Source: Zygnema circumcarinatum SAG 698-1b
Taxonomy: Eukaryota > Plantae > Zygnematophyceae
Assembly: GCA_037447605.1 (NCBI GenBank)
Contig: CM074811.1
Location: forward strand, 1,364,001-1,428,000
Reading direction: 5' to 3'
Length of the DNA: 64,000 nucleotides
Each line of letters starts with the position of its first letter. The stretch's first letter is position 1. Positions 2,914-59,367 of the stretch are shown here, one piece after another. A model generated the notes under the pieces. It worked only from the letters and a program-made list of their open reading frames with translations. It searched no databases and had not been told where the DNA came from. The position numbers and the translations under genes are program-made.

Positions 2914-4598
2914 TTATTGCTGCTTTATGCCCAATTTCTTCATCGTGTCAACCATAACATGGCACACTGCAAAGCATCCTGGAGGCCTCAAGTCATCATC
3001 GTCAGAATCTGAGTAGTCTCCAGCAAACCCTGTTGCACTCTCTGTGCTTGTTCTTCCATCCAACCGCACAACTTCATTCAGCTTGCTTGCTTCGAACCCA
3101 TTGTGATCCCTTTCTGACTGCTTCTCTGCGGCTTCATTTTTCTCAGGCTGGGCTTCAGGTAACACAGATACAGCTTCAGAACTTTGCGCCTGGGAAGGTT
3201 GTTCTGCCTCGTTATCTGCCGCCAGTTCTTCCTGCCTGACAGCTGTTTCCGGCTGATCACTAGAGCTTTCTTCCTGCACATTAACATCCATGTCACGCAG
3301 TTACAAACTGAAACGACTCAGCTCCACTAATCAAAACAGTGTCTGCAGTCAGGGCTTACCGTTACAAAGACGGCAGAAAAGCGGGTTCTCTTTAAAAGCT
3401 AGTATCCTATTCAATCTTGTTCCCGATGAATGGGGTGTATGTCAATGAGTCAACCGATATTAGAATGTGATGCTTTTAGTGTATTGCCATTAAGCATTGA
3501 TGCTTTCACATTACTCATTTGTTTATGGAGCCAAATAAACAACAATCTACCAAGTGTTTTGTGCTGACATCACAACCTTCGACACAAAAGCACCGCCTTG
3601 AAATCCTCGATCTGCACGGGAGCCCCAGCTTTGCAAATAAAATAAAAAAATACTAAGCTAATCTCCAAACAAAGCAGGAATAAGTTCAAGGCAGCCGCAA
3701 GTACCTGAGGAACTGCAGGCTTGAACAGAGAAATCACTGGCTCAGATAATTCTTCAGTTTCAGAGTTCACATTTACGATGTCCTCACTTACTCGTCGAAC
3801 TTGCATGCTAACTGCATCACCTTCAAATTCCTTTTTCTCCTCATCCTTTACTTCTCTGCCACGGGTTTGTTCTATACTTGGTCCGTCGTCTTCCTCCTCC
3901 TCCTCCTCTTCCTCAACCTCCTCTTCCACTTCCTCATCGTCAAACTGGATGCCTTGCACCTTGTCAACAGACCGTATCCTCAAGCTAAGGTTGTTATTCA
4001 AAGATTTCTTCACCTCCTCCTCTGTCAAACACTTTGTTTCAGCTAACTCGTTCGTTTGCTCCTCTTCGTTCGCTTCCTCAGAGTCCACAGCTTTCACAAT
4101 TAAATTTTCGCGTTCCTGCTCCTCCTTGACATTCTTTCTTGTCTCCTCCACATCGGACTCCTCCATGTCATCACCACTCTCATCCTCATCGAAATGATCC
4201 ACAACCCCGGTTTTGGGAGGGTTTGGAACATAGTCATCATTGTTAGCGTCAAAATCTTTTTCCGAAACGGAAAGCGCTGGGTACTCTCCGTCATCAAATT
4301 TGGTGTCCTCCTCCTCCTCACTTTCTTGCTGATCATCCATTAACGTCACACCATTGCTATGAGTGACAAACTTATCTATTACGAAAATTTGCGGCTCCGC
4401 TGTGTTTATTCTGACTTTTGCTGCTCCAGACGGCTCAGTGTGACCTTCATCAGCTTCACCTTCACCTTCCTCTTCTTCCTCCTCCCAGTCTTCCTCAGAA
4501 TCACCGAGCTCTTTATACATTACCTCCTGATCATCATCTTCGTCCTTGCTAACTTTGGCACGGGGTGCGAAGGCCACTTCTGCGGCCATGGCTGCCAA
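2914..4598 (-). CDS. Uncharacterised highly acidic, low-complexity protein (acidic gene A)
   Basis: E/D-rich ORF 3705-4598 ends at a phase-0 donor (CAG|GTACTT) and joins a phase-0 acceptor at 3273 (GTGCAG|GAA) into ORF 2914-3291. A further exon near 2508-2810 is possible but unresolved. No family recognised. Confidence 0.62.
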
Positions 4599-5367
4599 GC
4601 GCTGCTGACTCTGAAAACCAAAGAGAAGGGGTAAACTCTGTGCGTCCTTGACGCTAGCGTATTAAAACTCAAGTAATCAAGCAAACGGAGTGGGAAAGAA
4701 AAAAGTACGAGGCGAAAAGAAGGAAAAGGAGATTAATAAAAAAATTAAACTTGCAGCATACAACGGCTAACTCCGCAGTACCGCCGAGTTTCCCGCAACC
4801 AAGTCACAAGAACGCCTGCCGCCCGTCCCTCTTCAAAAAATTCTCTCGCTTCCAGCACCTCAGTACTCCCTCTTTAACCCCCTCTCTCCCCTCTCTCCCT
4901 CCCTCTCTCTCCTCCCTCCCTCCCTCCCTCTCCTGCAGCGGCGGCCTCCGGCGAGCGGCTTTGGGGGCTCCACGTGTCGCTCTGGGGAGGAGCCAGCGCC
5001 GCCCTGCGGCTTGTTGGGGGCCCGCGCCTCCCGCTTCCCTCTGAGGACGGCCTCTCGTCCGTCGGCGGCCACGTCGCGTCCGCGAGCAGCGGATACTTCG
5101 AGGTACTTCAAATGAATAATTCCGTTTCCCTTTGTACGGACGCTGTTTGAAAATCGACGGCCGACAAGCGCTGAATTTGAAAAATAACGGTCATGATCGA
5201 CCGTTGTGCCGTACGGACGGATCTCTACGGGAAACAAACGGTCGACCGGTTCAAGATTCCGTACCGTACAAAAAAAATTGTTCCAGTACGGTACGGTGTG
5301 TGGAAAGTGACGTCACTGATCGCTCGCGCGCGTCGTACATGTGCTGTAGGAATTGCACGTTTAAAAT

Positions 5368-5753
5368 CTCGAGCAACCATTGGCAATGGTTCCAACCATT
5401 GGATTGAATGGACATGGGAAATGATTGGAACAAAAAAAAAAACAACCATTAAAACCATGGAACCATTTGTTTTGATTAATTTTGAATATTAAGGTGAAAA
5501 TCCAAGTTAGGTTGCTATAGAAAATCTAGAAGCACGGCCCTTTCGCACAATACGAGACGTGAGTTCAAATCCGTCAGTCGAGGAAGACACGTTTCCATTT
5601 TTCTAGGTACAGTACCGTAATGTTTCCAACCATTGCAATGGCTTCCAACCATTGGGTTCATCATTGGTTGCCTCCAATGGTTGCCAAGAATTCCCATGAT
5701 TGCCAACTATTGGGCGCCAACCAATGCTATCCAACGGTTGTCCAATGGGCTCG
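5368..5753. mobile_element. Foldback/MITE-like non-autonomous element, copy 1 (palindromic CAATGG/CCATTG module arrays flanking a spacer)
   Basis: Two module arrays (about 5370-5470 and 5620-5753) with imperfect terminal inverted repeats (TCGAGCAACCATTGG vs reverse complement TCGAGCCCATTGG). Arm and spacer are homologous, in inverse orientation, to 54133-54656. No target-site duplication seen. Confidence 0.55.
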
Positions 5754-6316: not shown

Positions 6317-9300
6317 ATGGCTACGCCTATTGAGGTTACTGGACGTGATGACGTGACGGAGGAGGTGGTGAATGAAGAGATGGAAGCGGATGCAGTCCCA
6401 AAGCAAGGGGTGGTGAGCTTGCATGACAGCAGTTCTTTGGGAGATAAAGGAAAAGAGGAACCTTCAAAATATGAGAGCCCTTCAGAGCGCGAGAAAGCAT
6501 CTCAGCATAGTTCAGGGCTTGAAGCTGCTGAAGCTATAGCTGAGTATCCTGCGCCTTTGGTGTCGAACGATCAGTCAGACGTTTACGTTGAGGGTAGTCC
6601 GAGAGCTGGACCAGCCGGGTCGACTATTTCGGAAGAGCTCTATCCTGCATTAAGTATATCTGAGAAGGATTGGGGGGATGATGAATGGTACATACCTGAA
6701 CGAGATGGAAGGAAAAGAGTGAAAGGAAGAGCATCTGATGGTGGGATTCCATTCGCACCTCAGAGTTGGGAACTAAATGAAGCAGTTGATGTCCGACCAC
6801 GAGTGAGGGCAGTTAGCGAGTTTGGGATAGACAGCGAGGAGGAGGAAGGAGACGACGATGAAGAGGAGGAGGAGGGACAATGGGAAGAACTTGACGATCA
6901 TGAGGAATCTGAAGTTGAGAGTTTGGTGGAGGAGGAGGAGGAGGAGGAGGTGCGTGGGAATGGCCTATCGGTGAGAAAAGATGGGGTGGTACGAGTCGCT
7001 GGTCGAGAAGGAGATCGTTTTGGACTCCATGAGTATGAGGATGATGACAATTCGGACGTGGGGGTCGACGAGGAGAATGATGGCGTTGAAGAAAGTTCAA
7101 TTTCCAATGTTTCTCAGAGCATTATTGCCCGGATGGAGGCAGAGGAGGAACTGGAACCATTTCACACTTCTGGGTTAAATGCAAAAGTTGTACATGATGA
7201 TGAAGACGAGTGGGAAGAGGAGGACGAAGAGGACGAAGAGGACTTAGACGAGTTCCTTGACGAGGCCCTCCACTTTGTGGCTGAACAAGCCATTCCAAGA
7301 GCCGCTCCAAGTCCAGACCACGAAGGGGTGAGTCATCTCTTCTGCCAAGCTTCTTCCTTCCGTGCACAAGTATCCTTTCCACGTATGCATATGGATATGC
7401 TCATGCGCAAGTGTTTGTCACAAACTTTTGGCTACCTTCCAGTATCTCCGATTTTGTTGAAGGGTCCATTGGTCAAGCAATAGTTTACCGATGCCACACA
7501 TAGAGAAATTCGAGCTGCCTCGCCAGAGGAAAGAGATATTTCTCTAAGCGGATTGTTCTATTAGTGCTTGTTAGTTAATTCTGTGATGTTGTTTTTGCTC
7601 CTTACCTTTTTGATTAGTGTCAGGTTCACACGTTCAATGTCTGCTACATAAGTACCGTACTTCTTATTCAGGAAATCTGAGATTTTTTGTTTCTTTTTCA
7701 GGTAGAACATCGTGAGCTCCCAGCCTGGATTTCGTTGAGGAGAGCAGATTTATCAGAAGAGCAGCAAAAACAAGTGGAGGAAGCGAGATCTGCGCTTATG
7801 GCAAGTGAGGCCTTGGCTTCGCATCTGGAAACTGAGCTTGATGGGTATCGCAAAAGAGCTTCTACTTTAGAAGCCATGACTCTCAGACTCTCAGAGGAGC
7901 TACATGCCAAACGACGTCTTGTGATTATCTCAGCAGAGCGTGCAAGGCTGGCAGAGGCAGCTGCAGCAGCCATGGCATCAAAAGTGGAAACTACAGGAAC
8001 AAGTGAGAATGCAGAATTAGCACAATTGAAGGAAGAGGTCCAACGGCTGAGGGAAGAGATGGCTAAGAAGACGGTGCAATCAGCTCGAGGGGATGAGCAG
8101 CATGGCACGCAAGTGGAGGAGGTTACTTGCTCACGAGGTGGAGCAATTGAGACATCTCTCAATGGTAGTGGGGAGGAGGCGAGAGAATTGATAGCGAAGT
8201 TGAGAAGGGATTTGGAATGCCAGGAAAAAGTGGCCAAAGATCAAGCGAATAAAGCCACAATGACTCGACATAAGCTTCTTCAGGCTGAGCAAGCATTGGA
8301 AGCCATGAGATCGACGTTACAGGCCGAGGAGGTTGCAAAACGTGAAATGACGAGAGACCTTAAAACGTTGCGGGAACAGGTGGCATCTTTGCAGCAGAGT
8401 GGGAAGGGAGCACCAAATGAACGGCTGGGGGGGGGTGGGTTAAGAAAGGTGCATGGAAGGGATAAGATGCTTCAACGGGATATCATGGCAAAGGATCTGG
8501 GTCTGTCAGATGTTGATGAAGAAACGAAGAAATTAAAGGAGGAGTTGAAATCAGTGATGAGCTTATTGTCTGAAGCAGCAAAATGTTTTTGTTTGGAAAA
8601 ATGTTTGGAGTCTGGCACGAACGGGCTGCCAGCTTCACAGAATTCAGGAGGGGAGCTAGTAAAACTACTTACCAGTAAGTTACAGGATTTGCAAGAGGAA
8701 GTCAAAGCAGCTCAGAAGCGGGCTAGTGGGGCAGAGAATCGACTGGCTACTTTTGGAATACAACCTGATGAGGCAGCTCACTTGGAGTCAATAGAAAAAG
8801 AGTCAGATAGGCTGAAAAGGCAGGCGAAGGCTGTTGGGGAGAAGCTAGAGTTGGAGAGACAACGGTATGAGGACAAGGGAGGGGCATTGGCAAGTTTTCA
8901 TAGCAACCCTCTCTTCGTTTCTGAACCCCACGAGTCGGAAAGGGCGGGAATGTCCGGCTCTCCTAATGAGCGAGAGCATGGGTTAGTCAAGTCATTGGTG
9001 CGTAAGTTCGAGGATGATGTGAATCTGACGAGATTGGAAATCGAGCAGTGGAAGGCGAGAGAGGAAGCAGCAAAGACGGAGGCTCAAAGGCATGCTGTCC
9101 GACATTCTTTTGATAAACGGTTGCAGTCAGTGCGGGCAACAGCTGTGGGTGGTAGCAATGGCAGTGTGGGTGAGGGTGCGAAAAAGGGGAGGGGTCAGAA
9201 GTCTGTTTTCGCAGAGGAAGTGCAAAGGGATGTGGCATTTCCATCCTTGAAGAACGTGCATGAAGCTGAAACGAAGGGAGTAGGGGGAGAAGATCATACA

Positions 9301-13800: not shown

Positions 13801-15220
13801 TTTTTTTACCTACAACTCACGTGCCTTAATATGTCAGGCTTCCTACAAGATAAAATAGGCTCCACTACAAAAGGAAAACTTTAGAGTATCCTCTCTAAAC
13901 TGAAGTTCATATTTGCCGCACAACTTTTGAACAATTTCCGACAACTCGCCTTAGCATATATCAATGCTTGGACATTATTAGGTTCAATTGTGACTCACCT
14001 CCATTGACATAACCTCCTCAAGGTCCAGTGGAAGACGCGCATCTTTACCCGTCGGAATGGTGACATACTTCACCACAGGAACACCACCTTGCAAGTCATA
14101 AAGTCCGACCTGCATTCCATATCTCCACCGATGAAGCCCAAATTGAACACAGTCAGACCAGGGGAATATAAACAAACCAAGCATGATATTTTCGAATTTT
14201 TAATCACTCACAGCTAGAGTTATCTTCTGAATCGTAAAGGTTCCTAACTTTCGTGTTTATTGGGTATAACGGATGTCTAAAAAATAATCTCCACATTAAC
14301 GACTAGGAACCACGTATCTCTTGCTATTTTCGAATCAATCAATGAAAGGATTGTCCAAAACATGACGTTCTTCATGCCTCAACTAAGGGACGAAGGGTTT
14401 TCTGGTTGACTTGAATGGTGCTGACTTGAATAGAAATGTTAGAGATGGCGACAGAAATCCTGCAGAACATAGAATGGACAACTTGGAAGTATCCCGCACA
14501 CATCAGGCATTGCTATGCAGATCCATGCAATTGCATCGACCGCATTTTCACTATGATTCACTTGTCTCTTCATCAAAATAAAACGAAAGGTGATACTGAA
14601 AATACGATTGGCTACTTCTGAAGCCCCCCCCGATAACTCCCTAACTGAAGGAGTTTCTGCAGAAAAATCTCCCACCATGTTCACACCTTGTGCCCAAAAG
14701 TAAGCAGTCCAAAAAGCGCGGTGGGATGCAGCGCCTCAAGAGCTGCCAGAAGCGCGCTCTTCACAAGCTCTAGAAACTCCTCCGAACTTGCTAAGTCCAC
14801 AGCTGCCACATACACCGGCCTTCTATACAAGTCGCCGCCCTCCCCCCCCACCCTCCCTCCATCCCCTCCCTCTTCCTCCACAGCCACATCCAGCTCCACC
14901 ATGGTGCTTGCGAGCTCTGGAAGCTCCGCCAGGCGAGCCCTATTTCCATACCGTTGGTAGTTGTAATCTGCAAAGGAGTTCACCGCCTCACAGAGCGAAC
15001 AGCGCCAACTGTACCGCTCCAGCGTACAGTATGCGTTGATGTATCCGTAGCACTCTTCACAGCGTGCCACTTCGTCTGCATGTGGCAATGGTGCAGCGGA
15101 TTGGAGCGAAGAGCTGCCTTCAAGGGAGAAAGGCTGCACCACGCACGCCCAGGGAAGCCCGCAGCTGTCTCTTAAGGCCGGAGTCTTGGGAAACTTCCCT
15201 GTGGTGAAACGGATAGACAT
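10837..15220 (-). CDS. SEC23D: COPII coat Sec23/Sec24-family protein, SEC23D-like (At2g27460 type)
   Basis: Six exons with GT-AG borders: 14687-15220, 13999-14109, 12193-13191, 11798-12072, 11296-11510, 10837-11054. Zn finger RCEECYGYINAYC...WRCSLC; trunk RPVYVAAVDLASSEEFLELVKSALLAALEAL; C-terminus FLIEEQDVDG...GFVSFL...EYMK. Confidence 0.93.
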
Positions 15221-16023
15221 GGCTGCACGAACCCTAAAATCGATGAGAGACCCAACGACAGAATGCGAGGATGCGCGTCTCGGATCTGCTCCTTTCAGAT
15301 CTGATCAGCACCCGAGGCGGGCAAAGGCGTTGGCTCTGAGGAGAAGTGAGAGAGCGGCGAGGGAGAGGGAGAAGGAGAGAGAGGCGATGGAAGAGGGCCC
15401 GCCATGGCCTTCAGAGAGAGCCGTCTCCGGGAGGGCAGGGAGAGGGGGTGGCCTTGGGGGAAGGGTCCGACGTGGCGGACCGCAAAATTCGGACCCAATG
15501 GCAGCCGTTCTTGACACATACGGTGTGCCACGTGGCACGTTGCTGGAGCCGGAAGTCGCCACGTGGCGCCCAACGGTCGGTTTGGTGGCGGCTCCTCCAA
15601 ACGGGCGGTGGGCCCCGCACGACTTTGCGACCTGGCGAATGTTATGACGTCATTAACAGCTGATATCTCGTCATTTTTCGTACCATAGATGGTACAGGCC
15701 GTGCGGTACGGCAGGGCGTGCGGTACGGCAGCAAAGTACCGCCGTTAGGGTTTGCATGGGGAAGGGAAGGAGAGAGGGGTAGAGGGGGAGAGAGAGGGAG
15801 ATAGGGGTGAGAGAGAGAGGGAGACAGGGGTGAGAGAGAGAGGGAGGGAGAGGGAGAGAGGGCGGGGTGAGAGAGGGAAGGGCGAGAAGGTGGAGTGCGC
15901 CACGGGGCTGGGATTGAGCTGGTGGCCAGCGTGCCCTGCGGCTGCAGACAGCTGAGAGGAACCTTTAAGGTTCCATTACTCGTAGGCGGCGAAGCCGTCG
16001 CTTCCAGCAGCATTGCAATAGCC
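15221..16023. promoter_or_regulatory. Bidirectional promoter between SEC23D and DUF819
   Basis: Two palindromic G-boxes GCCACGTGGC (15527, 15558), five GTAC cores (15680-15739), telo-box TAGGGTTT (~15746) and GA-rich leaders pointing in both directions. Confidence 0.7.
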
Positions 16024-21091: not shown

Positions 21092-22660
21092 GGAAGCTGC
21101 AAACGACGACACCAGGAACCTCCCCGCAAGAAACTCCGCCAGATGAAGGCCCTCCTTGTCCTAGCTCCTTCTCCTCCAAAACTTCATTTCCTCAAGGAAG
21201 CGCTGCCCTCGAGCCGAGGGACTTCAAGGCGGGCTCGGCCGCCATGGCCTCTTCCGCCATTCATTCTTCCACAGCTGGACCTGTTGCCACCTTCCGAACT
21301 TACGGAATTTTTCGGATAAAGGCGGGTTTCCTAGCTGTCCAAAATGGACGGTCAGATGCTGTCGATATTGATCCGACGGTAAATATTTACTTAATCCTAC
21401 GGCTGACGTTGATGGAATGTCAGAAGGGCTGACATCTATGTTACTGTATGGGTAAACATCCGATTTTTCCTACAGTTGACGTCTACTTCAGCTTTAGATG
21501 ACGTCATTTACATCGGACGGTTCACGTTCATCGCATTCTACGGCTGCATGTCCGTTAAATCGCCGGCGGGTTTTCTCCTGATGAGAGAGAGCCGAGCCAC
21601 ATGGCGCCCCGCGAGGCCATTCCGTCGCCTCTCATGGCTGCCTCGCCTCCACGCCCCTTCAACCCGCCATGGCCCCATGGGCCACTCGTGTTGGAGGCCA
21701 TCCCACTGGCCTTCCGCCCTCTCCCTCTACGCAACGTGCCTCAAATCGGTTACCTTCACGGCTGCTTTTAGAGCCAGTTGTTAGGCCTAGAAGCAGAGTT
21801 CCGCTCATAGTTTTTATTTCGTTCTTAAGTCATTTGTTGCCGGTTCCTCTTGGTTCTACATGTTTTTGTCCGAGTACATTTGATGGCATCGCCATTGTGA
21901 GATGAATGTCAGATCCATCCATTATTCGATCCTATGGCTGACAATTGCTGGTACTTCTGATGTTCACCATATTCCATCGTACGGCAACTCTGACAGAATG
22001 GTCCTTTGCGATGTTGGTTGAAACCCCAGCCCATTTCTCTTGCTGTCCATTCGACCATATGCAAATGGGAAAAAAAGATGGGTTTTAAGGCTTTTTAGGG
22101 ATTGTTTAGACAATCCGACAATCGTCATTCTTGGTTCGAATTACTGAACGTTTTTTGTTACCTTGTTGACACGCAAGGGACAAGCCACCGGACCGTTCAG
22201 TTCGTACAAGGTGATTTCGGCTGTTGCGATGTCCGAGCTAGAAAACATGGCCAGACGCATACTCGTACTAATCGATCCTTAACGAAAACCATCCTTAAAG
22301 TAAATTATGACTTCGGTGAAATCCATAACAAGGGCACTTCGCAAGGACACTTTTCAGAGAGAAAACCCTCCCTTAGCGTTGCACCTCTTTTCCCCTCTCC
22401 TCCATAGCTTCCCTTGTTGCAAAACCAGGGCTTCTTATCGGGGACAAGCCCCGACCTAAATATAGGATTCCGACACTTGATACATATGACTTGAGGTCCT
22501 ATTCTATGCTTGAAAGTTGCTGCGTTGTAAGTACATTGCACCTAGTCCGTTTCAGAAGGAAGGCTCCTCAACAGCTAGATAAGGCTGACTCCCTCAGAAG
22601 TAACAGAGTCTACCCTATTCTTTTCACTTCTGGCAGAGAAGCAGAGAGTACCTTTGGAAC

Positions 22661-33600: not shown

Positions 33601-34197
33601 TTCAAGCTGATGTTGAAGCGGAGCAGGAGTGACTGGGAGCACGTCATCCTCTACATTGTTGTTGCCACTAATTGACTGCCGGGCACTAGCCTTTTTTGCC
33701 CCCTTCCGTGAACTCTTCGGTCGAGACAATGCTTTTTTCTTTGCTTTTTTATTTAGGGTTTCCTCCGCACCTCCCTCTCCTGCGTCTTCAGATATGCCAG
33801 GTGTGCTGGATCCATTCACATTCAGGCTGGGACTGCTGCCTGGCTTAACTTCAGCTTCTAATTTCCTCTTGCGTGACTCCTTCACCACTTCCGACTCGAC
33901 ATCATTCCCTTTACTTGAAGTCAAATGCGGCAGCTCCACCTCTTTCAACTCACCACACGTCCCAGGGCCGACAATTAGGGTTTCCTCATTATCTGCCCTT
34001 ACTGCAGCAAGCTCTCCCTCCCCACCAACAACATCCACGTTTCTCTCATCCTCTGGCTCCCTAAAAGGAGCAGAGCTGCTCTCAACATGCACCTCTTCCT
34101 CCCCTCCACATTCCCGGGTCGCGGATGCATCCTCCAGGCCTGCTGCTGCAGCCTCCTCAGATGCTGCACATGCCCCTGCCTCCTCTGCGGAAGCCAT
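30641..34197 (-). CDS. TRO: TRAUCO / ASH2-like COMPASS (H3K4 methyltransferase complex) subunit with SPRY domain
   Basis: Spliced SPRY domain: [39 protein letters not shown]...[28 protein letters not shown]...[11 protein letters not shown]...VRFNFGPDF. Exon 1 33559-34197; long low-complexity last exon. Confidence 0.93.
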
Positions 34198-34754
34198 GGC
34201 TGCCGCCACCTCTCACATGAGAGCTCTGCCCACTTTCAGCTTTCCACGAGGCACTCGCCAGGAGTCCTGCCACGTGTCCCAACCACAGCGCTCCCTCCCA
34301 CGCACAAGGCCCCAGCGTGCGCCACGTGGCAGCGGACGGCGGCTGACGGCCTCATGACTGGGCGTCGTCGCGCCGAGTGGGAAGCACTTTTGTCGTGTTC
34401 TGTGCGCTTTTGGGGGGCGCCCATGGGCATGGGCATGGACAAAGTCAACAACATACGAGGAACCATGGGCTCACAGCTTTCTACTTTCGTCCGTAGGTCC
34501 TTTGCGACCGGTTCCTCGTGGTTCTCCCTGTTGCTTCTGTGCGTAGACATTCGATGGCTTCGCCATGCGTGAGATCGATGCCAAATTCTTCCTTTCTTGA
34601 ACCGATACTAATGACCTAGCGAAAGGAAAGCTTGAGTTTTGAGCTTTGAGCTTGCGTATTGTTGTATGCTTCTAGGCCCAACAACAACACGGCTCTGGAA
34701 GCAGCCGCCAAGGGCGCCCTTGTGGGGCGCAGTCCCAATCCTGCTGAGGGCGCG

Positions 34755-34862
34755 CAATGGTTGCCAACCATTGAATCCAACGGTTGCAACCACTGGCAAT
34801 GGTTGGCTAGGATCCTTGCCAATGCTTGCCACGCTTGCCAAGCGTTACATGCCAATGGTTGG
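34755..34862. repeat. Solo arm of the palindromic CAATGG/CCATTG element family
   Basis: 34756-34792 matches 54516-54552 at 34/37 nt by manual alignment and contains CAATGGTTG-C-CAACCATTG. Confidence 0.7.
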
Positions 34863-35182
34863 TCCCTCGCCTCAAACGTGCACGCGGACGGACCTTCGAT
34901 GGCGAGAGCTCATCGACTTTGCGTCGCAGCGTATTCCGAAACCAGTACGATTATTTCACATTTTCAATTAATTTCGGATGATACATGTACTGATTTCGAT
35001 TTCTACTTTTGGGGTGCATACCGCATCATTATTCAAGCAGTGTGAGTGGAAGGGAGGGGGGGAGCGACAGTGGAAGGGGAGTGAGGGTCGAGGGGGAGAG
35101 AGAAAACGGACGAGACACAGAGCGAGGAGGAGGAGGAGGGAGCGGTGGACATATATTTAAGGCACGGAGTGTTTGGGCTGCA

Positions 35183-37947
35183 ATGCAACATGGCGCTCTG
35201 CGTGCCCTGCTCTCCGGGAACAGTTGTGGAAGGCAGCTGAGGAGCAGACTTTTTTTCCAAGGAAGCCCAAAGGCAGCAGCAGCAGCAGCAGCAGCAGCAG
35301 GGAGGCGATGGAGCTCAAGCGCTGCAGAGGGCGGAAGCGCAGGAGAGCAGCAGTTGGTGGCATCAGTGATTCTGGAGCGCCTGCCCGTCCTGCTTCCAGA
35401 GCTTCCTCAGTGGGAGATTGATTATCTCACTTTTAGGTCGACTCTCAACTTTTTGGTCGGAACCCTGTGATGCACTCGTACATCATGTGAATTTCTTTAG
35501 AAAGCACCCCTCCATTTCAGTCAGACACTTCATTTCCCTTTCAGCTTTCAGTTTATCACTTAGGGTTCAGAATTTCAGCTGGTACACGATTATGCATGAA
35601 GTTTTTTCTCTATGTTGGAGCATAATTGAAGCCACACTTGCTACCAGACACCTATTTTTTTGTCTCTTTTGCGCGTTGGACGGAATGACCCTCTGGCAGT
35701 TTCTGTTTTGCTTCTTGAGAACGGCAGGCCGTCTGCGTGAACATTTGGAGCAATAGCTTGACAAACTGCAATCTTGCTGACTCTCATTTCAGCCGTTCGC
35801 TATGGCCCCTGGCGCTGGGTATGCGGAGGCAGTTTTGAGCGGCGGCAGCTTTACCGGAAGGAGTATCCGGCAGAGTTTATTGATATGGGTTCCTCTGTTG
35901 GGTAAGTTTTTTTTTCTTATTCGAACAGATTAATCAATTTGTTATTGCTCATTTTTGGAGGTGAGTGATGATTTTTATTAGGTGCTGATTGCATCGGAGT
36001 ATCGTACACGAACAGTAGCTGCATTGCAGTTTATGGGCCTCAGAAAAGTGTAAGCATTCCTTTGTAAAGTGATCTACTTTCAAGCGTGGCTTTGTGAATT
36101 CCAAAAACCATTATTTATAGCGAAAAAATCTCTGAAGTTGTTGAAAATGGCGGCTGTTCCACTCTCTCCTGTATAGCAATAATGCTGGAAATGCGTATTA
36201 ACATTTTAGCGAACCTATAAAACCGAGTTCACTTTTGAGGTATGGAGAGGGAGGTCGTCGCTATATTACTTACAGTCCAATCTTAGAGGTAGTCCATCTA
36301 GCTGAACTTACAGCGGTTTTTATGCTCTTATAAGTGGATAAAAACATACTTCAAATACGATCTCATGAAGACAAAAAACTTGAATGAAACACCATCATGT
36401 CTACTTGTCAATACACTAGAGAGATTTCAAGAGAGACAGGGGAACCTTTAAATTTACTGTCCTAAGCCAGTTTCATGGGGTATGATGTCCTGGCACAGCT
36501 GTTGGTGACCCTAATATGAGTTAGTAAGAATGACATGACTAAGCAAAGAATCATATTGAATTAGTATAGGCTTCATCTGCATATTCTTCAAACTCGTGGA
36601 TGATTGCCGCCTGTGAGCGGTATAAGATCATTCAATACTCCACATATCTGCAGATACCATGTCTGCAGACTGCGATTTGATTTTCCTGAATATCTATGGT
36701 CCATGTGTGCTTTGCTATTACAGGGTGGACGAGGGGGACTTGACATTTGAGCCGGCGCCTCGAGAAACTGAAGCAGATCGGACTAATGATATACGGTGAG
36801 AGAACGACGCAAAGTTGCAGCCATGGATCACTTCGTTCTTCCTTCTACTTGGCTGTCATCAAATAAATTGTGAAAGTCTAGTTGATGACCTTTCCTTGAA
36901 AAGCGCTATTGTCCTAACTCAGGGTTGATGCTTATCAGTAGTTACCTAATGTGCTGAGTCCCTGGATGGGCAGTGCACATGAAACCTGCACATTGTCATT
37001 TTTTGTTTCCCATGTGCTTCACTTTCTTGCATAACGGCGCAGTTCTGTGCAGCGCGCACTGGATAAGCGACTTTTCTTTATTGTGCACGGGCAGCCCCTA
37101 AAGAGCCAGTCCAATGTGGCCAGGTGGCACTTTCCAGAAAAACCATACGATAATGAAGATACAATGCGGCAGGTGGGCCTTTTGGCCTTTTAATCCTGTA
37201 AAAGTTGATTTTGGCATTGGCAATTCACTTGAACCATATTCCTTGATGAGGTGGACCTTCAGATAGAGATGAAAGTACATGCGAGAACCGCCCTATTGTT
37301 AGACTGGCACACAAGTGTAACCCGTCAATCTTGAATCAGACATTTCACAGGGTAGACATGCAAATAGTATGAGGTGCGCTCGTCAATGTGATTGTTCCTT
37401 TTGGGGGGATGCGTGGTTTCTGCAGTGTGCCGAGGCAGCATTGGCAAGAAACGTTGGGACAAACATGGAAGTATATTTTGTAGGAAATGCGCCATGTGGG
37501 CATCTGCCTTCCCTATCTGAACCCAATCTCACGGTGAGGATACCATGCCTTTGTGTCATCATGGTTTCAGATTTTTGTGACATTCTGTCCCTCTGATTGA
37601 TATGCCCTGCACGCCGTGGGTTGTGTGTGCCTGGGCTTATACAGCTCCTTCCTCCCTACAGTTTTATATACATCTCTACACTCAGATTACCCTCAAAGTC
37701 TGTCTGAGACAACAATGTAGGTTTCATCTTTCCTATCTTGAAATGCCATTTGACATTTGCGATCGTCATCATGTATGTTGTGGACATGTTGTACCTCGAG
37801 GCGCAGCGCTTCTTCTTCCGCTCACAATTCCTTGATGGAAGAATACTTCTTCAAAACCAGAAACTTAAGGACTATGCGTGGGTGACAAAGGAGGAGCTTG
37901 CCAACTATTTTGAGGACTACGGGTTCTACCAAAAGATGCTCATATGA
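35183..37947 (+). CDS. MRPL46: Mitochondrial ribosomal protein mL46 (DECOY-like)
   Basis: Presequence-like N-terminus; VASVILERLPVLLP, FERRQLYRKEYPAEF, FEPAPRETEADRTND, RALDKRLFLFV, WHFPEK, VYFVGNAPCGH, RFFFRSQ...DYAWVTKEEL; all exons have GT-AG borders. Confidence 0.92.
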
Positions 37948-40770: not shown

Positions 40771-40853
40771 GCCGCGCCTCAAATGACAAAAGGTATGCGG
40801 CAGCGCGGCACGCTCGCCGCTCCTCAGCCCTGCGTCTGCCGAGGGCGCGAGCT

Positions 40854-41794
<941 letters not shown>

Positions 41795-43367
41795 GAGAAG
41801 AGCAGCAGCAGCGCAGGAGCGACGAGAGAGGAGAGAGCGGGAAACGGAGCCTGCGACTGCCTGGATGGCAAGCATGGATGGATTCATGTATGGGCGGCGC
41901 TGGATGGCATGTGGCCTTGATGGAGGCATGCATGCATCCATGCATGCCCGGATTGGGGGCCGTAGCGAGCCATTGGCGGGTATGTGCGGGCATGGATGGA
42001 TGGGCCATCATGGGTCGGCATGGGCGTATTGCCCATGGCCAGACCATCATGTGCACCAAGGGACATTTGGGTACAGTATCGACACGCCCTCGCCCGTATG
42101 CCTATACGAGGATGGAGCTCTTGATAATGCCCATTGGTTTGTTGAGAGTTTGCTTTTTTTTCGAAGCTCCTTCTCGTGCATGCTTCTGCAGCAGCACGGT
42201 ATCAGCTGGCTGTTGCGCTAGCAGAAGCATGGGCTCATAATATGGGCGCCAGGAAGAGATTCCAGATGTAAATTCTTGAATGAATGAAGGTGTAAGATAC
42301 GGCTTTACTATGACTCGGAAGATGCATGGCTTGATAACGTCGAACCTAAAATTCCCTGAAACTTTTCAAGGTACAAGAGCCTTCGATTAAGCGTATGCTA
42401 CTTTATGCTGTGCTTGCTACTCGGTATTGTAAAAAAAAAAAATTCTTACAACATTTGTCAAAAGGACTTTGTCGGGACACCTACGGATGTGCGCATTTTC
42501 ACGCCCTCCCACACAGGCACTACAAATTCATAGAACGATATTACAGCCCAACTGAGGTAGGGGATATGCTGCAAGTTTATTCATCATTGATAAGTGGCAC
42601 CTTGCCAATACCTATGACTGATCGATGTACGTGACTCCATTCGAAGGCAAAGTTTGAGTACTGAGTTGATAACTATCTTCTTGACGAAGGAACGCAGCGA
42701 CCAGTTCATATGCGGCAGCTTGGCTTGCATCACGCTTGCCATAGCCCTCTCCCTTCCCTATTTGCAAAACTTCTCGTGGTGCATAATCTGACAGGAGCTC
42801 TAACGAAGCTTCAACAACAAACCTGCAAAGCAGCAGTGTCTTGGAGGTCAGACTACCCTATTTCACGATGCAAAAGTGATGACCGTTGTAAACAGATTAC
42901 AAATCACATCCAGACAGTTACGATAGATACACGCTCCTTATGGTTCGGCACTGGCAAGCACTAGCTCATACACGAATAGGGAGCTCGAAAAAGTGACTTG
43001 CCCAAAATATTTATCAAACAGAGACAATTTCAGCATTGCCCTTCAAAACAGTCAAATTCCGCCTGGAAATGATTAGATCAGGTTCAGGACTTGATTCCAA
43101 TCAAATTAAACACATTCAGGAAGCAACGAGGGACTAAGCATATTAACAAGAGAATAGAACATCCGTTAAAGCGTGCGTCTACTTGACCTTCCAAATCATA
43201 CCTCGTGTGTAGATCACAATCGAAAACCAAACAAACACGTCCACCTTCCTTTGACATCATTTGCAACCAAGAGCTTCACATTCTATCCAAGTCATGCTTC
43301 TTCAGCAGCTTTGCCTTGCGCCTACATGCGAGAGCACGAGCAAGCAGTGAAATCATATGCACGACTT

Positions 43368-52057: not shown

Positions 52058-52836
52058 GCGATCCGCCAGGGAAGCTGGCCCTCCCTGCTATCCTATGGGA
52101 GGGAAAAAAGCCCTTCCTCCTCGTCTTCTCGAACTCTCTTATTTCCCTTTTTTCTGAAGGAACCAGTGCGGTTTCTAGCCATTGTACATGGAAAACAGAA
52201 AGCTGAAGGGATCAGCAACACAGGTCTATCGGATCAATACCCGAACTCATAGAGACGAACTGATGTTTGAATAATGTATGTGCTCTTTCTTCTCTATTCA
52301 ATGTATGGCTGCCAAGGGCTAGCATGCGCATATGTTGGATTATTTGTTCAAGGTTCAGACTCTGCCGCAATCTTTCAATGTTCGTTCCAAACATAACCAT
52401 TGGCTGAATAAAAGTTCAGTTCCAGATATTGCAGCTCCGCACGGAGCCACGTTCCTTTTCTCTTGCAGTGTTCCCTTGCCGCTAACCACTTGCAGCCTTA
52501 ACAAGAGCCCGTTTTCCCGTGTGCTCTCTTTATAGATTTTCGCAATGGCATGGCAGGCATGTCTGGCAGTGGACTCCCTTCCCCTCCCCCTCCCCCAACC
52601 CCTCTCCTTTCCCGTCCCCCCTCTTCCCCGCTCCTCCCCACCCCTCCCCTCCCCTCCTTTCCCTCCCCTCCCTTCCCTCCCCTCCCCTCCTTTCTCTCCA
52701 CGCCCCGCTCCTGTTTCCTCCTGCCTCTCGCCCTCCCGCCCCTCTCCCTCCCACTCGCCCTCCCGCCTCCCTCCCTGCGGCCTTCCCGCCTGCAACAGCT
52801 CTGTTCGCGAAAACTCGTTCATACAGCGGCGAGGCT

Positions 52837-52970
52837 TTTTATAGGTGCTTGCCGGATCTCCGTCTGTTCCCTGATTGGGCCACGTGGCCACTGGGAATCT
52901 TCCTTGTCGGCGGCGGCGGCCAAAGTATATTCTGGGCGGTACGGCACGAGGCATCCTGCTGCCACGTGGC
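52837..52970 (-). promoter_or_regulatory. Core promoter of the HHO gene: TATA box, two G-boxes, GAATCT and P1BS
   Basis: TATAAAA on the minus strand at 52837-52843; GCCACGTGGC at 52879 and 52961; GAATCT at 52895-52900; GTATATTC (GNATATNC) at 52925-52932. Confidence 0.65.
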
Positions 52971-53199
52971 GTTGCGTGGCGGCGAGCCGGGCGGGCGGCA
53001 GGGCATCGCCGAAGATTCGGCCGAGAGCGGTGCGCTCCTGGCGGCCTGCCAGGATGGATGCTCGCCGTACAGGCGTACGGCCTGCACGGACTTGGCCAAG
53101 GACGGACTCGTGGTTTCTGCTGTCTAGGGCGGCAAGTTGGGTAACAACTAGTGATCCGTATGTATCAAACGCGTGTATTTCCCCTTCTTGAAATGAATC

Positions 53200-53839
53200 G
53201 CATTGAACTCACGATGGCGAGGCCATCAAAAGTACATGAACAAAAGCAGCATGTGGAACCACGAGGGACTGGTCGCAAAGGACCTAGGCAGGCGTGCCAT
53301 TGAAGGTGCTTGGGGGGGGAGGGGGGGGTGTATCATACACTGTATAATACATGCGTAATATACAACATTTTAAAAATACAATGTACTTTTAATGTATTTA
53401 ACGTCTTTTCTTCGTTTTCTTGCTAGTTAGACAGATATTGATTATAATGATTGAAGCTTCAAGCCGTAAGGAGCTCTAGGACACCTTATACAAGTCTCAA
53501 AATAGTTGTATTGAAAAATAGGTCCACAAGAGCAGTTTCAAGGGGGGCGGTGATGATGGGACATATGGTAATGCTGCTACCTACAGCGGTAAAGGCATCA
53601 TGAGCAGGATAAGAGAAGACGAGCAACAACAAAATGATGATGAAAACTCTTTATGCACACAACAAAAAACAGCCACGCCTTTCTTCTTCTTCTACTATTT
53701 ATAATAATTACACCCAACGGAGACAAGTGAATTGCGAGGAAAATGGCATTGAACTCACGGTGGAGAAGCCATCAAATGTACATGGACAAAAGCATGATGT
53801 GGAACCACGAAGGACGACTGGTCGCAAAGGACCTAAGCA
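53200..53839 (+). repeat. Pair of ~90-bp imperfect direct repeats (53200-53290 and 53746-53839)
   Basis: gcattgaactcacg...ccatcaaa(a/t)gtacatg(a/g)acaaaagc...atgtggaaccacga...gactggtcgcaaaggaccta(g/a)gca present twice, 546 bp apart. Confidence 0.9.
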
Positions 53840-54132
53840 CAAAAGAAAGAAGCTAGTGAATCGTTTGTCTCATTGATGATGCCATAATTATTGAGATCAA
53901 TCTGGTCAAGAATATCGTCACCAATGCCAGCACCACGACGCAAGCAAAATTTTGACTGCCTGCCCCCGGCGGCGCCGTGCTTGGCCCACTGGGGCGTGTC
54001 AGACTTCAAAAAATTCTCGTACTTCGAAAAAATCGATATTCGTAACATTTTTGTTTAGTCTGGGTCGACCTGAAGCTGCCACGTGGCGCGCAGGCTGTCC
54101 GGGAGGCTTCTGTACAGCACTGGCCATGCAGC

Positions 54133-54656
54133 GTCGGACCATTGGGTCGCCAACCGTTGGCCAAACATTGGACGGCAATGGTTGGTTCAACCATTGAATG
54201 GAACCATTGGCATCCAATGGTTTCGACCATTGGCAGTGATTGAGTCGGTCCGATGCCAATGATTGGCAAACACTACAATGGTTGGGAACCATTGGACACA
54301 ACCAATGATGAGTCTAATGTTTGGCAAATGCAACCATTACCAAGAAAGTGTACAGACTTGTACGCCGGCTGACTGATTCAAACTCATGTCTTGTGCGATA
54401 TTCAATGGGAGCGACGTGCTTAAACCACTAGTCGCAACTTACAAAGATGTAGATACCATTTGAAAAACCTACATCAAATCATAAAACTCCCCAACCAATG
54501 GTTCGAACCATTGCTAATGGTTGGCAACCATTAAATCCAACGGTTCCAACCATCAACATCCAACGGTTGCCGCCAGTCACGGGCAATTGTTGGTTGGGCC
54601 GCGACTCGCGAGTCAACGGCTCGCAACCATCCCAACGGTTGATCCAACGGTCCGAC
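54133..54656. mobile_element. Foldback/MITE-like non-autonomous element, copy 2
   Basis: Imperfect TIRs: GTCGGACCATTGGGTCGCCAACCGTTGG (54133-54160) vs reverse complement GTCGGACCGTTGGATCAACCGTTGG (54632-54656). Two palindromic module arrays flank a spacer homologous to that of copy 1. Confidence 0.6.
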
Positions 54657-55720
54657 CTGTGCACCCTCCGCCGCCAAGTGTCAGCCCGCCCCTCCGCCAC
54701 CGCGACCGTACGGCGGCGGGGAGCAGTCGCCGGACTGAACGTTGCGGCGGGCGGGCCCAGACGGCGCCACGCGCCCCCGCCGGCGGGGCAAGCGGGCCGT
54801 ACCGCCGCGGGGGGAGGGGACGGGCGCCGCGTGGCGGGGGGGCCGGGGCCCATCAATGCGGCGGGCGGCGGGGGACGCCTCGGGGACCGGCGGGTCCTTG
54901 TCCTTGTCCTTGTTCTTTTGGCCGGGGGGGAAAGGGAGGGGGAGAGGGAGGGAGGGACGCCGCGTGGGCGGCACACGCGCACGGCGACAAAACGACAATC
55001 TTTCGATTTTGGAAGGCGCGCCCGCGCTACTGTTCGCGGGAGCGGGCGCTGCGCGTCCTTGAGGCAGTTAGCGTTGGGGGGGACTGGAACTGCGGATAGA
55101 ACGGAGCAGCGACTCATGGAGCAATGCATTTTGCCAAATCGGACCAACTGTCCGGTGAAATTTTTGGGAGGAGTAAACCAGTACTCTTCATTCGGCAGAT
55201 CCACTTATAACTCGGAAAATATGTATTAGTTTTGAAGTACATTACGGTTTTCCTCCTTCCCCATTTTTCTGTTCAAGATTAGCCCGCCCCCCAGACAGAA
55301 CAAATGATTCAGGCAGCAAAAGGTGGCCCCGCCCCCTTTTTTTTTTTCTGGACTGCTCAATCGTGTAACTACTTGCAAGCATGCAGGCAGGGGGGGAGCT
55401 CAACCGACGGCCGAGAGTCCCCCAAGATTCCCGGATTGCGACCTCTCCGCGCATGCCCAGCGTCCGATTGGCCATCCGGATCGCCGTACGCCGGTAACCG
55501 CCCGCGTCACCGAACTGCAAAATGTCCTCTCCCTTGAATAATACCGCAATAAAAAACGCCAGTTGGGCGCCACTGTACGGAGCAAGTTACAGTACGTCAT
55601 TCCCCGTCGTTTTAAAAAAGACAAATCCTGAACATTTTGCCATTTTGCGCCTTGCCCGCCCCAGCCGCACGCGCCACCTCACCAAATCCGCCACGGATTC
55701 CGGCCCCGTCGAGGCCGGCC

Positions 55721-56070
55721 CCCCTGCCCGGGCCCTAATCTTCCGGAGGCTGCCCGCTTGCCGCCCCCCTGCCCGGGCCCTAATCTACCGGCGACTGCCC
55801 GCTCGCCACTCTCCTGACCGGGCCCTAATTTACCGGCGGCTGCCCGCTTGTCGGCCCCCTGCCCGGGCCCTAATTTACTGGCAGCTGCCCGCTCGCCACC
55901 CCCCCTGACCGGCCCTTGTTACCGGCGGCTGCCCGCTTGTCGCCCCCCTGCCCGGGCCCTAATTTACTGGCGGCTGCCCGCTCGCCACCCCCCCTGACCG
56001 GGCCCTTGTTACCGGCGGCTGCCCGCTCGCCGCCCCCCTGCCCGGGAACTAATTTTCCGGCGGCTGCCCG
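55721..56070 (+). repeat. GC-rich 45-bp minisatellite, ~8 copies with alternating A/B subtypes
   Basis: Unit ~CCCTG(C/A)CCGGGCCCTAATTTACCGGCGGCTGCCCGCT(C/T)G(C/T)C...; the 15-aa periodicity PARALIYRRLPACRP is visible in the ORF track. Confidence 0.95.
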
Positions 56071-56318
56071 GAGCCGCTTGGACCGCTCATCAATGCCAGC
56101 CGCCGCCCTCACTTCGCCTCGCCCGCCCGGCCGCCACCGCGCCACGTGGCCCCCAATCTGCTCAATTTCCCCGCGCGCTGATTGGCCCCGCTGCGCGGCA
56201 GACCAATCAGTCCCGCCCACCCGCCCGCCCGCTCGCCCTCGCGATCTCCGTACCGCGAGGCCCACCTCGCGCGGAGGCCGCCACGCCGTGCGGCATCTCC
56301 GTACGGCCCCGGCCGCTG

Positions 56319-56443
56319 CAGGCGCTTCGGTATATCGACATATTGCGATATGGTTGCTGCAGGCAGGCAGACAGGCTTGCGGGCGTGCAGCTCCAGGCGC
56401 TGCGGTATATCGAGATATTGCGATACGGCTGCTGCAGGCAGGC
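56319..56443 (+). repeat. Two 50-bp direct repeats (56319-56368, 56394-56443)
   Basis: caggcgct(t/g)cggtatatcga(c/g)atattgcgata(t/c)gg(t/c)tgctgcaggcaggc; 46/50 identical by manual alignment. Confidence 0.92.
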
Positions 56444-56764
56444 CTGCAGGCGGGACCATTCTGGACGGGACGGTTCGGGGCGGGTCGGGACGGGTCGGCT
56501 GTCAGGACTTGGGGAGGAAGGGGTCTGGGTGGAGGGCGAGGCGGGAGGGAGGGAGCGGGAGAGAAGGTTTCTTGGAAGGGCAAGGAGGGAGGGAGGGAGG
56601 GAGGGAGGAGAGGTTGTAGGAGAGTGAGAGGGGCGGTGGATGTGGAAGGGGGGAAAGGGTGCGAGAGCGGATTTGAATGGTGAGCGGAGAAGCGGAAGGG
56701 CGAAGATACAAGCGGTTTTGAAGGTGGTTCAGGGCTGAATTGAAGGTGACGATCTGCGCCAGCA

Positions 56765-59367
56765 ATGGATGCAATGGCTGTGCACCAGTCTCCTAAAGAC
56801 AGGTGTCGCAAGCATTTGCAGGTGAGTGGTCGGGGTTGGCGTGTATGTGGGATTTGAAGCCCTTAATAAAGAATGTTGCAGAATGAAGCAGGTGAAGCGC
56901 GGCAGTGTCTGCGAGTGAAGAGAGGAACATGTTCATTATCAGGTTTTCTTCGAGGAGCAACAGCGCGTTGTCTGAGTTCTTGCAGGATGCTGAGCGGCTT
57001 GGACGTATGCTGAATTGCGCCCTACCAGAAATGATCTCCAACTTCAAAGAAGGCACGGAATTGCTTGAGCAGCGAGTGCGGGATTTGGAAGAGCAGCTGA
57101 AGGCTGAGAGACGGGAAAAGGAAGAGGCGAAGGAGCAGTTGGAGGCCTTGGAAAAGAAGCTGTCCCTCAGACAGCATAGCTTAGGACGTAATCAGGTGCT
57201 TCCGTCAATAGGAAGTACCATTGGGGGAGAGCAGGTTGTGTCTCTTTCGATGACCCGCGTGGAGTCTGTGTCAAGAATGGCGGAACCCACTACGGCAACT
57301 CTGACTGAAGTGCACAGACATTTGCAAGAACAGATGCAGTTTCAGGAGCAAATGCAGTTGCAAGAGCAAATGCAGTTGCAAGAACAACATCAGCAGCATC
57401 GTAAGGAGCAGCAGCATCTGCAGCTGCAAATGAACAAGTCATCGCAGTTGCGAATGGACCTTCCCATTAAATTGGAGCAGCAGCACATCCATCTCGAGCT
57501 GCACCCGCTGGTTGAGCCAGTGCAGCAGATTCAGCAGCAATTCAGCCAGGGTCTGATGGATATGTCGAACCCCGCAAGCGCGAATCAGCTGCAGCATCAG
57601 CAGCATCTGCAGCAGGTGCTCGGCCTGGGACTCGCAGAGCCACAGCAGCAGCTACAACAACTTGAGCAGCCGTGTGGAGTTGATGTGAAACTCCATTCAG
57701 TTTCAGAGTCTCAGCAGCTTTCTCCGCAGATGCAGATAGATATGAGTGTGTCTGACTCGCAGCAACTGCAGAAGTCTGGACCTGTTCTGGATAGCGGAGC
57801 CTTGCAACCGCAGGTGCGACAGCAGATGTGCATGGAAGCTGCTTCTCCGAATAGCACTACCACCCTGTTCTCCATGTCGACATGTGGCAGTAATTCGTTG
57901 GTGCAGATGAATATTGGGGAGGCCATGGAGCAGCCTGGGCTACTAGGAGGGGATCCTTCACAATTGAGTCAGTTGGCAAACGATGCGTCTCAAATGCCTC
58001 CACACAGGGAAGTTACGATGTCGGATGTGCAATCAGCGCACCTTGTGCAGGCCTCCCTTGCTTCACAGCTTACAGGACCAGGGTACACGGTCGAAATGCA
58101 TGCACAGTCCGAGCAGCAGAGTATGCCGCTTGAATTGCCTCGGACAGGCGACTTCCAGCAGACTCATGCGCAGCAACAACACAATATACAGCAAGTGCAA
58201 GTCCAACCAATGCAACCGTTTCAGCTTCAGCACCAGCAGCAGCAACTGCAGCAACTACAGCTTCAGCAGCAACAGCAGCAACATCTCCAGCAGCAAAACG
58301 AATCACAGCAGTCGCAATCTGTTATCCAGCAGCAACTGCAGCAATTTCAGCAGCAGCAGCAGCAAGACCAGCACCAAATGGAGCTGCAGAAACAGGAGAT
58401 GTTGTCGCAGATTCCTCAGCAGTCCCAAGGTGTTGCGGACATTCAGATGCAGCTTCACGAGAGTCAACAGCAACACTTGCAGCAGCCAACTGAGAAGGAG
58501 AGACAGCAAATGCATTTGCAGCATGTGGAGATGGAGAGGCATCAGCAGCAGCAGCAGCAGCACCATCACGCCCAGATGCTGCAGGCGGAGCGTCAGAAAC
58601 AGCAACAACAACAGCAGATGGAATTCCAGCAACATCAGCAGCAGCAGTCGGGCCAACAGCATGTGTCGGATTCCCCGATGGTGCCTGTAATTTCGAGTGT
58701 GCAAAGTGCTGTATTTCTTTCTTCTCCCTCTCCAGCTGCCCTGAGCACAGTGCAGCTACCTGGTCCAATATTTAGCCACATTCCTCGACTTGCTGCATTG
58801 CAGTCAGCAGTCATGCCTCTTAATTCCCCTTCCTCCTCCCTGCTTCCCTCTAGATGTAGTACACCCGGTTCTTCAGAGCAGCCCTTTCAACCTCCCGTGT
58901 CTATCCACCAGCTACACCTTCCAGAACCTCCAGAAGCTGACGAAGGTGCATTACTGGCCAGGGCTCCTGAAAAGGGGCAAATGTTGAAGGCCGTAATGGA
59001 GTGTGGACCCGTTATTCTGAGCCTCATGCAGCCTGCCCCGGGCCCTCCATTCGGCCTACAAGGAGCAGGCGGAATCCCGGTGCCAACAACAAGTGCAACT
59101 CATATGGCTTTGACAGGCCACCTGCCCCCTCAGCTCCCGGGCCAAATCAACCCTCAAGTGGCAGGGCAACTTCTTACGGCAAGTGGTCAAATTGCAGCTG
59201 CGTATCCGCCAGGACTTGGTTTGGCGCCTGGTCTCGAGATGCGTATGGCAAATGGCAGGAGAGCGGTACGCCTGCCCTTCCATTCACCCAACCATATTCC
59301 TCTCCATGGGCCCCATTTCAATGGCGGCTTCTTACCCCCCATACATGTTCCTCCGGTCTTAATGTAG
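56765..59367 (+). CDS. DUF1635-like protein with an N-terminal coiled coil and a very long Gln-rich insertion
   Basis: Exon 1 56765-56821 (MDAMAVHQSPKDRCRKHLQ, donor GTGAGT) joins in phase 0 to 56986-59367. Coiled coil LLEQRVRDLEEQLKAERREKEEAKEQLEALEKK; late motif RAPEKGQMLKAVMECGPVILSL resembles the DUF1635 LPEKGKLLQAVMEAGPLLQTLL block as recalled. Confidence 0.6.

Follow-up and report, generated by a model that had tools for sequence, protein, structure and literature searches.

The question raised by the 524 bases at 54133–54656 of the window (the whole 64,000-nucleotide stretch of DNA that was analysed) is whether their dense packing of one short word in both orientations marks a mobile element, a cluster of regulatory sites or a repeat that expanded in place and, if it is a mobile element, whether the type is new. 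The sequence-only reading had favoured an undescribed foldback-type transposon, built from helically phased palindromes and found only between divergent genes. With a probability of roughly 0.6, we propose that this site (C) and two related ones at 5368–5753 (A) and ~34750–34873 (B) belong to a single family of small DNA transposons without coding capacity and represent old, degenerate copies of it, MITE-like elements of 390–520 bases together with one 125-base single arm. The features on which the argument draws are:

5368–5753, minus strand: copy A, a full element inverted relative to C, with arms at 5368–5465 and 5620–5753
5552–5580, minus strand: core of copy A, homologous to 54366–54394
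34750–34873, plus strand: copy B, one arm only, left-truncated and lacking the centre, its right end terminus-like
54133–54656, plus strand: copy C, a full element with left arm, centre and right arm
54133–54160, plus strand: left terminal inverted repeat of C, which opens with GTCGGACC and continues with ATTGG and a CAACCGTTGG unit
54133–54340, no strand assigned: left arm of C, a word array in both orientations, palindromic about 54244–54254
54244–54254, no strand assigned: internal terminus-like palindrome in C, TCGGTCCGA plus one flanking base on each side
54366–54394, plus strand: word-free conserved core at the centre of C, matching the reverse complement of 5552–5580
54492–54656, no strand assigned: right arm of C, with a 23-base unit present twice at 54525–54568
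54632–54656, minus strand: right terminal inverted repeat of C, pairing with 54133–54160

The ends of copy C are imperfect terminal inverted repeats, as had been noted from the letters: over 28 and 25 nt, 23 of 25 positions match the reverse complement with one 3-nt gap, and without the gap the match is 16 nt long at 88%. The inner half of this repeat (ACCATTGG) is also the word that is iterated through the arms, and C holds 20 instances of it at no more than one mismatch. The palindromes listed earlier for C are all in place, at 54176–54196, 54214–54233, 54276–54294, 54496–54513 (a perfect 18-mer) and 54515–54533. The left arm is itself largely symmetrical, with 54155–54328 hitting itself on the opposite strand (nhmmer, E 2e-8), and judging from its sequence the palindrome at 54244–54254 may mark where a short unit (54133–54254) joins a long one (54244–54656).

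The iterated word is 9–11 bases long and reads [G/C]CAACCATTG[G] in a logo of 57 instances, in which CAACCGTTG is a minority form. It is packed in both orientations at sites A, B and C only, and the recurrence claimed for it is borne out by the counts: AACCATTG is present at 21 places in the 64 kb (2.57 expected), a number attained in none of 100 shuffles, and 18 of the 21 matches fall within the three sites, with the three matches outside the arrays at chance level (2.6 expected for the whole window). The string TCCAACGGT is found five times in the window (0.36 expected), each time inside one of these sites. The word can alternatively be read as a CAA-N3-TTG frame; of 22 exact frames in the arrays, 12 have CCA/TGG at the centre of the frame and five have CCG/CGG, and outside the arrays the middles are scattered. 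Derivation of the dominant word by CpG decay of a palindrome CAACGGTTG was considered and rejected, the other deamination product (CAACAGTTG) being absent from the arrays against 12 occurrences of CCA/TGG. A literature search for the word itself returned primers and unrelated sequences and nothing else, and a metagenome scan for the head-to-head word pair gave 120 loci, each with one chance palindrome and none with an array. Helical phasing of the modules did not survive analysis: adjacent words are spaced by 9, 10, 13 or 14 bases, the Rayleigh strength is at most 0.21 at all periods from 9 to 13, and the array has no long-range phase at these periods. The 9–14-base spacing arises because units of 9–11 bases abut in a close-packed array.

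Homology among the three sites extends well beyond the word. With C as the query, nhmmer aligns 54224–54570 to 5740–5373 on the opposite strand in a single alignment (E 3.8e-17) that covers both arms and the word-free centre, about 350 bases with 67% identity over 321 columns, although these comparisons concern three copies in one window and the word helps to anchor the alignments of its own arrays. The inverse homologue proposed at 5368–5753 is thereby confirmed. The solo arm reported near 34755 is also recovered, at ~34750–34873 (about 125 bases; E 1e-6); it matches the right arm of C and includes a higher-order unit of 37 nt at 92% identity to 54516–54552. The same search found no fourth site in the window. 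The cores of C (54366–54394) and A (5552–5580) agree at 23 of 29 positions, in the orientation predicted by the arms, with a score of 17 against 10.0 ± 1.5 for dinucleotide shuffles, 3 of 1000 of which attain 17. Five of the six mismatched core positions are CpG/TpG/CpA differences, and the contrast of TTCAAA with TTTGAA suggests, from the two sequences, an ancestral TTCGAA. Methylation-driven decay could not be read from the overall spectrum of differences between A and C (48 transitions and 57 transversions), which is too saturated, and is visible in the core only.

The limits of the elements are equally consistent. Copy A ends in TCGAGC followed by the word, inverted at its two ends, so that terminal inverted repeats are present in both full copies; the homology between A and C starts at identical terminal bases (TCG, two purines, CC, then ATTGG), and the outer flanks of A and C have nothing in common. 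The window holds three copies, one of them (B) a single arm, and the two full copies have the same discrete ends at unrelated loci; all three are small (386 bases for A, 524 for C and about 125 for B) and have no coding capacity. The recurrence of one discrete unit, with the same inverted ends, at unrelated loci points to a mobile element and not to binding sites accumulated in place. The proposal of a non-autonomous family bounded by terminal inverted repeats therefore stands, on the homology over arms and word-free centre, the shared ends, the unrelated flanks and the inverted termini, and further on the identity of the iterated word with the inner half of the terminal repeat. We consider the repeat family real and very likely transposon-derived, and its architecture familiar; at 67% identity between copies, it is old.

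Some features of the arrays would also fit an origin in place, in which a palindromic word expanded by slippage or through hairpins and each array became a minisatellite with no mobility or shared origin: the 23-base unit at 54525–54568 is locally duplicated, and arm lengths vary between copies. Such a process does not account for the collinear word-free core common to A and C, for the same terminal bases and inverted termini at unrelated loci or for the 37-base unit that B and C have in common at 92% identity, and Tandem Repeats Finder (TRF) detects no tandem array in A, and we regard independent expansion as very unlikely.

The usual accompaniments of transposition are less evident. Neither A nor C shows a target-site duplication, and in a test for an 8-base duplication 2–3 of the 8 flanking positions match where at least 5 would be expected at this divergence; an hAT-type 8-base duplication is therefore unlikely, and one of 2–3 bases could have decayed at 67% identity. 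An hAT-like CAG lies just outside both termini of C and is absent from copy A. Pfam scans, which covered 40 open reading frames, found no transposase in the window, and open reading frames beginning within C match no Pfam family and extend into GC-rich repeat DNA. In RNA runs, contigs with a depth exceeding the local one connect 54226 with 54638 and 54532 with 54642, which suggests that shorter copies are present elsewhere in the genome.

The designation of C as a foldback element is correct in part. As single-stranded DNA, C pairs its ends and folds far better than its shuffles (z -8.1); the fold of A is less strong (z -2.9). The arms are, on the other hand, barely inverse copies of each other: beyond the terminus of ~28 nt they match each other best over 38 nt, at 71%, and the inverse self-hit of the whole element has an E value of 8.5e-5. 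This weak match indicates that most of the folding is local, within local palindromes. Elements of the FB foldback type resemble C in their strong single-stranded fold and in having arms made of short repeats, but have two long arms that mirror one another as inverted copies and are composed of tandem direct subrepeats, whereas C has a unique centre and folds mostly through its local palindromes. We have therefore rejected membership among the foldback transposons, since two long, mutually inverted arms are not present.

Closer parallels are found among elements whose ends carry many short subterminal repeats in both orientations, a known layout that makes the description of the type as new overstated. 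Emigrant of Arabidopsis, which is mobilised by the pogo-like Lemi1, has such repeats corresponding to the inner half of its terminal repeat, and repeats matching the inner half of the terminal repeat have been noted in the IR/DR ends of Sleeping Beauty (PMC1636448). Like Emigrant, the elements described here are small and non-coding, have terminal inverted repeats and reiterate the inner-half word subterminally in both orientations. They differ in carrying 5–12 repeats per arm where Emigrant has 2–3, in having no visible TA target duplication and no known autonomous partner, and in their age, the present copies being old (67% identity) and those of Emigrant homogeneous.

The ends of Ac/Ds (hAT) and En/Spm (CACTA) elements contain many subterminal hexamer or 12-mer repeats that bind the transposase, and both systems have internally deleted, non-autonomous derivatives. 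They share with A and C subterminal regions of 100–300 bases that are dense in one short word in both orientations; the 8-base or 3-base target duplications of those systems are not seen here, nor is there a CACTA terminus.

By analogy with these systems, the inner-half word ACCATTGG, reiterated 5–12 times per arm in both orientations within the subterminal 100–200 bases, would provide binding sites for the transposase of the family or for an accessory DNA-binding protein, and the bound protein would have assembled the two element ends for cut-and-paste movement. The location of the copies in 5’ intergenic DNA would then reflect a tendency of such elements to insert, or to be tolerated, near gene starts. 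The word arrays, the terminal repeats, the homology over arms and centre and the ends shared in unrelated flanks are observed directly; the mobility, the protein binding and the cause of this location we infer from them and from the analogy.

The genes around the three sites bear on a second explanation. On the evidence of open reading frames, A lies between a minus-strand gene (ATG at 4589) and a plus-strand gene (ATG at 6317), and B between a minus-strand gene (ATG at 34197) and a plus-strand gene (ATG at 35183) whose product resembles mitochondrial ribosomal protein L46. To the right of C is a gene at 56617–59367 on the plus strand, with an RNA-supported start at ~56617 and a GT..AG intron at 56816–56979, that encodes a Q-rich coiled-coil protein starting in exon 1 and without a Pfam match. 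The gene to the left of C is probably on the minus strand, as indicated by a TATA-like box at 52838–52846, G-boxes upstream of it, a GA-rich leader and a layout like that of the right gene; scoring of codon usage was also tried as a means of orienting this gene and had no discriminating power. The earlier statement that the element occurs only between divergent genes thus agrees with the open reading frames at A and B, depends at C on the probable strand of the left gene, and with n=3 is not statistically meaningful. The occurrence of all three sites in head-to-head DNA is suggestive and far from a test, and one divergent pair in the window, Sec24/DUF819 at 15220–15895, has no copy of the element. 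Copy C is 1.3–2 kb from either gene start, in an intergenic region of 3.8 kb that also holds another repeat family and a block of GC-rich tandem repeats.

Several other features of these regions were observed. The genes flanking A, at 3573–4589 (minus strand) and 6317–7483 (plus strand), both encode very acidic proteins that share the string YPALS(V/I)SEKD(F/W), followed by an acidic stretch, an aromatic residue and (V/I)P. BLASTP finds no significant overall similarity of the two to each other, and they may be a pair of distant paralogs or have a short linear motif in common. G-box palindromes (GCCACGTGGC or a CACGTG core) lie upstream of inferred gene starts at 52880–52890, 52963–52972, 54079–54089, 34321–34331 and 4970–4976, and GA/CT-rich tracts mark 5’ leaders at 4866–4937, 35047–35124, 52560–52780 and 56533–56631. 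The GC block (54660–56600, 59–69% GC) houses a 45-base tandem repeat in at least seven copies and a 65-base unit present twice (55653–56070 and 56312–56451); it has open frames on both strands with no Pfam match, and its RNA depth is very low.

The arrays might instead be working cis-regulatory modules, homotypic clusters of sites for a host factor in shared head-to-head promoters, whether or not a transposon delivered them. The putative factor would be of the MYB type, recognising the CAACGG form, or a dimeric one for the CAA-N3-TTG frame. In addition to the head-to-head setting of all three sites (with the left gene of C probably, by its sequence features, in the required orientation), this explanation can draw on the confinement of all five TCCAACGGT strings to the arrays. 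Four of the five fit the MSA consensus, (T/C)C(T/C)AACGG(T/C)(T/C)A with its AACGG core, at 10 of 11 positions (PMC5405339), as does the TCCAACGGTT variant, a minority form of the word. Six AACGG cores fall in the 524 bases of C, compared with a mean of 1.7 in the 2 kb upstream of randomly chosen plant genes (PMC5405339), and MITEs are documented to have brought motifs for transcription factors such as E2F, bZIP60, PIF3 and TCP15/23 into plant promoters (PMC5950925). The present family resembles those MITEs in placing many factor-like words, including TCCAACGGTT, beside gene starts.

Against a regulatory function, the dominant word is AATGG/CCATT and lacks the AACGG core, and so differs from the MSA/MYB3R element. 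The word is not enriched in the other promoters of the window, C lies well away from both of its flanking starts, another divergent pair (Sec24/DUF819) carries no copy, and the flanking genes have no common function (acidic proteins at A, an L46-like protein at B and a Q-rich coiled-coil protein at C). Conservation between A and C is 74–79% in word columns, 70% in arm spacers and 60% in the centre; word columns barely better conserved than the arm spacers are as expected for neutral decay, and alignment anchoring alone could be enough to produce the slight excess. The modules had further been likened to NF-Y, LEAFY and MSA sites, all of which are resemblances of strings, and among them only that of the TCCAACGGTT variant fits a published consensus. 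An array of NF-Y CCAAT boxes is not what is found, since ATTGG requires a G after the 9-mer that is present in 30 of the 57 instances, and the AACC half of the conserved core CAACCATTG lies outside the CCAAT pentamer. Taking both sides together, we think it unlikely that the arrays are working regulatory modules.

The transposon reading leaves room for a later change of role, in which the family would have spread MYB-type (TCCAACGGTT) and CAA-N3-TTG words and a subset of its copies would now work, in either orientation, as enhancers shared by head-to-head genes or as boundaries between them. We hold this to be quite improbable. We know of no case of transposon-borne regulatory wiring in the algal relatives of land plants, and such co-option, if true, would be an early-plant example of mobile elements wiring regulation. 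In land plants themselves, binding sites carried by transposons are known to give rise to new regulatory wiring (PMC5950925). If the transposon reading holds, there is one more repeat family of a streptophyte alga to annotate and mask, and such arrays can pass for promoter motifs in searches for cis-elements; the family would become more important if its copies were enriched genome-wide at gene starts, lay in open chromatin and were bound by host factors.

The hairpin potential of the elements raises another alternative, that the centre encodes a small RNA for which the arrays supply promoter or processing signals, or that small RNAs derive from the entire hairpin. Both DNA and RNA hairpins are predicted to be strong, and the core common to A and C contains a string (GAGTTCAAATCC in copy A) that we take to be B-box-like. 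Neither the window nor the elements have an Rfam match at the gathering threshold, however, and relaxed thresholds return noise; a tRNA scan of the window found no tRNA, and the depth of RNA runs over the element is 0–8, against 38–80 for the neighbouring gene. A small-RNA origin is accordingly, in our estimation, extremely unlikely, and decayed copies of a non-coding transposon family remain the preferred reading.

A second repeat family was observed in the same intergenic regions, with pieces at 53196–53286 and 53736–53859 in direct orientation and at 34471–34591 and 21859–21911 in inverted orientation. Within 53196–53859, two direct repeats of 90–125 bases flank 450 bases of AT-rich DNA. 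Word depths of its pieces in RNA runs are in the thousands, with many different flanks, which indicates a transcribed repeat of high copy number that may be SINE- or TRIM-like. Members of this family lie within 300 bases of both B and C, so repeats do accumulate in these intergenic regions, as the transposon reading would lead one to expect.

Elsewhere in the window, a (GA)n-rich microsatellite of about 1 kb at 40830–41800 has a strong purine skew and gives rise to spurious long open reading frames on both strands. Strings resembling telomere repeats (TTAGGGTTT) occur at 33753–33761 and 33975–33983, inside the minus-strand open reading frame to the left of B. The window also encodes a SKIP/SNW protein that is 70–84% identical to proteins of Sphagnum, Closterium, Marchantia and Mesotaenium.
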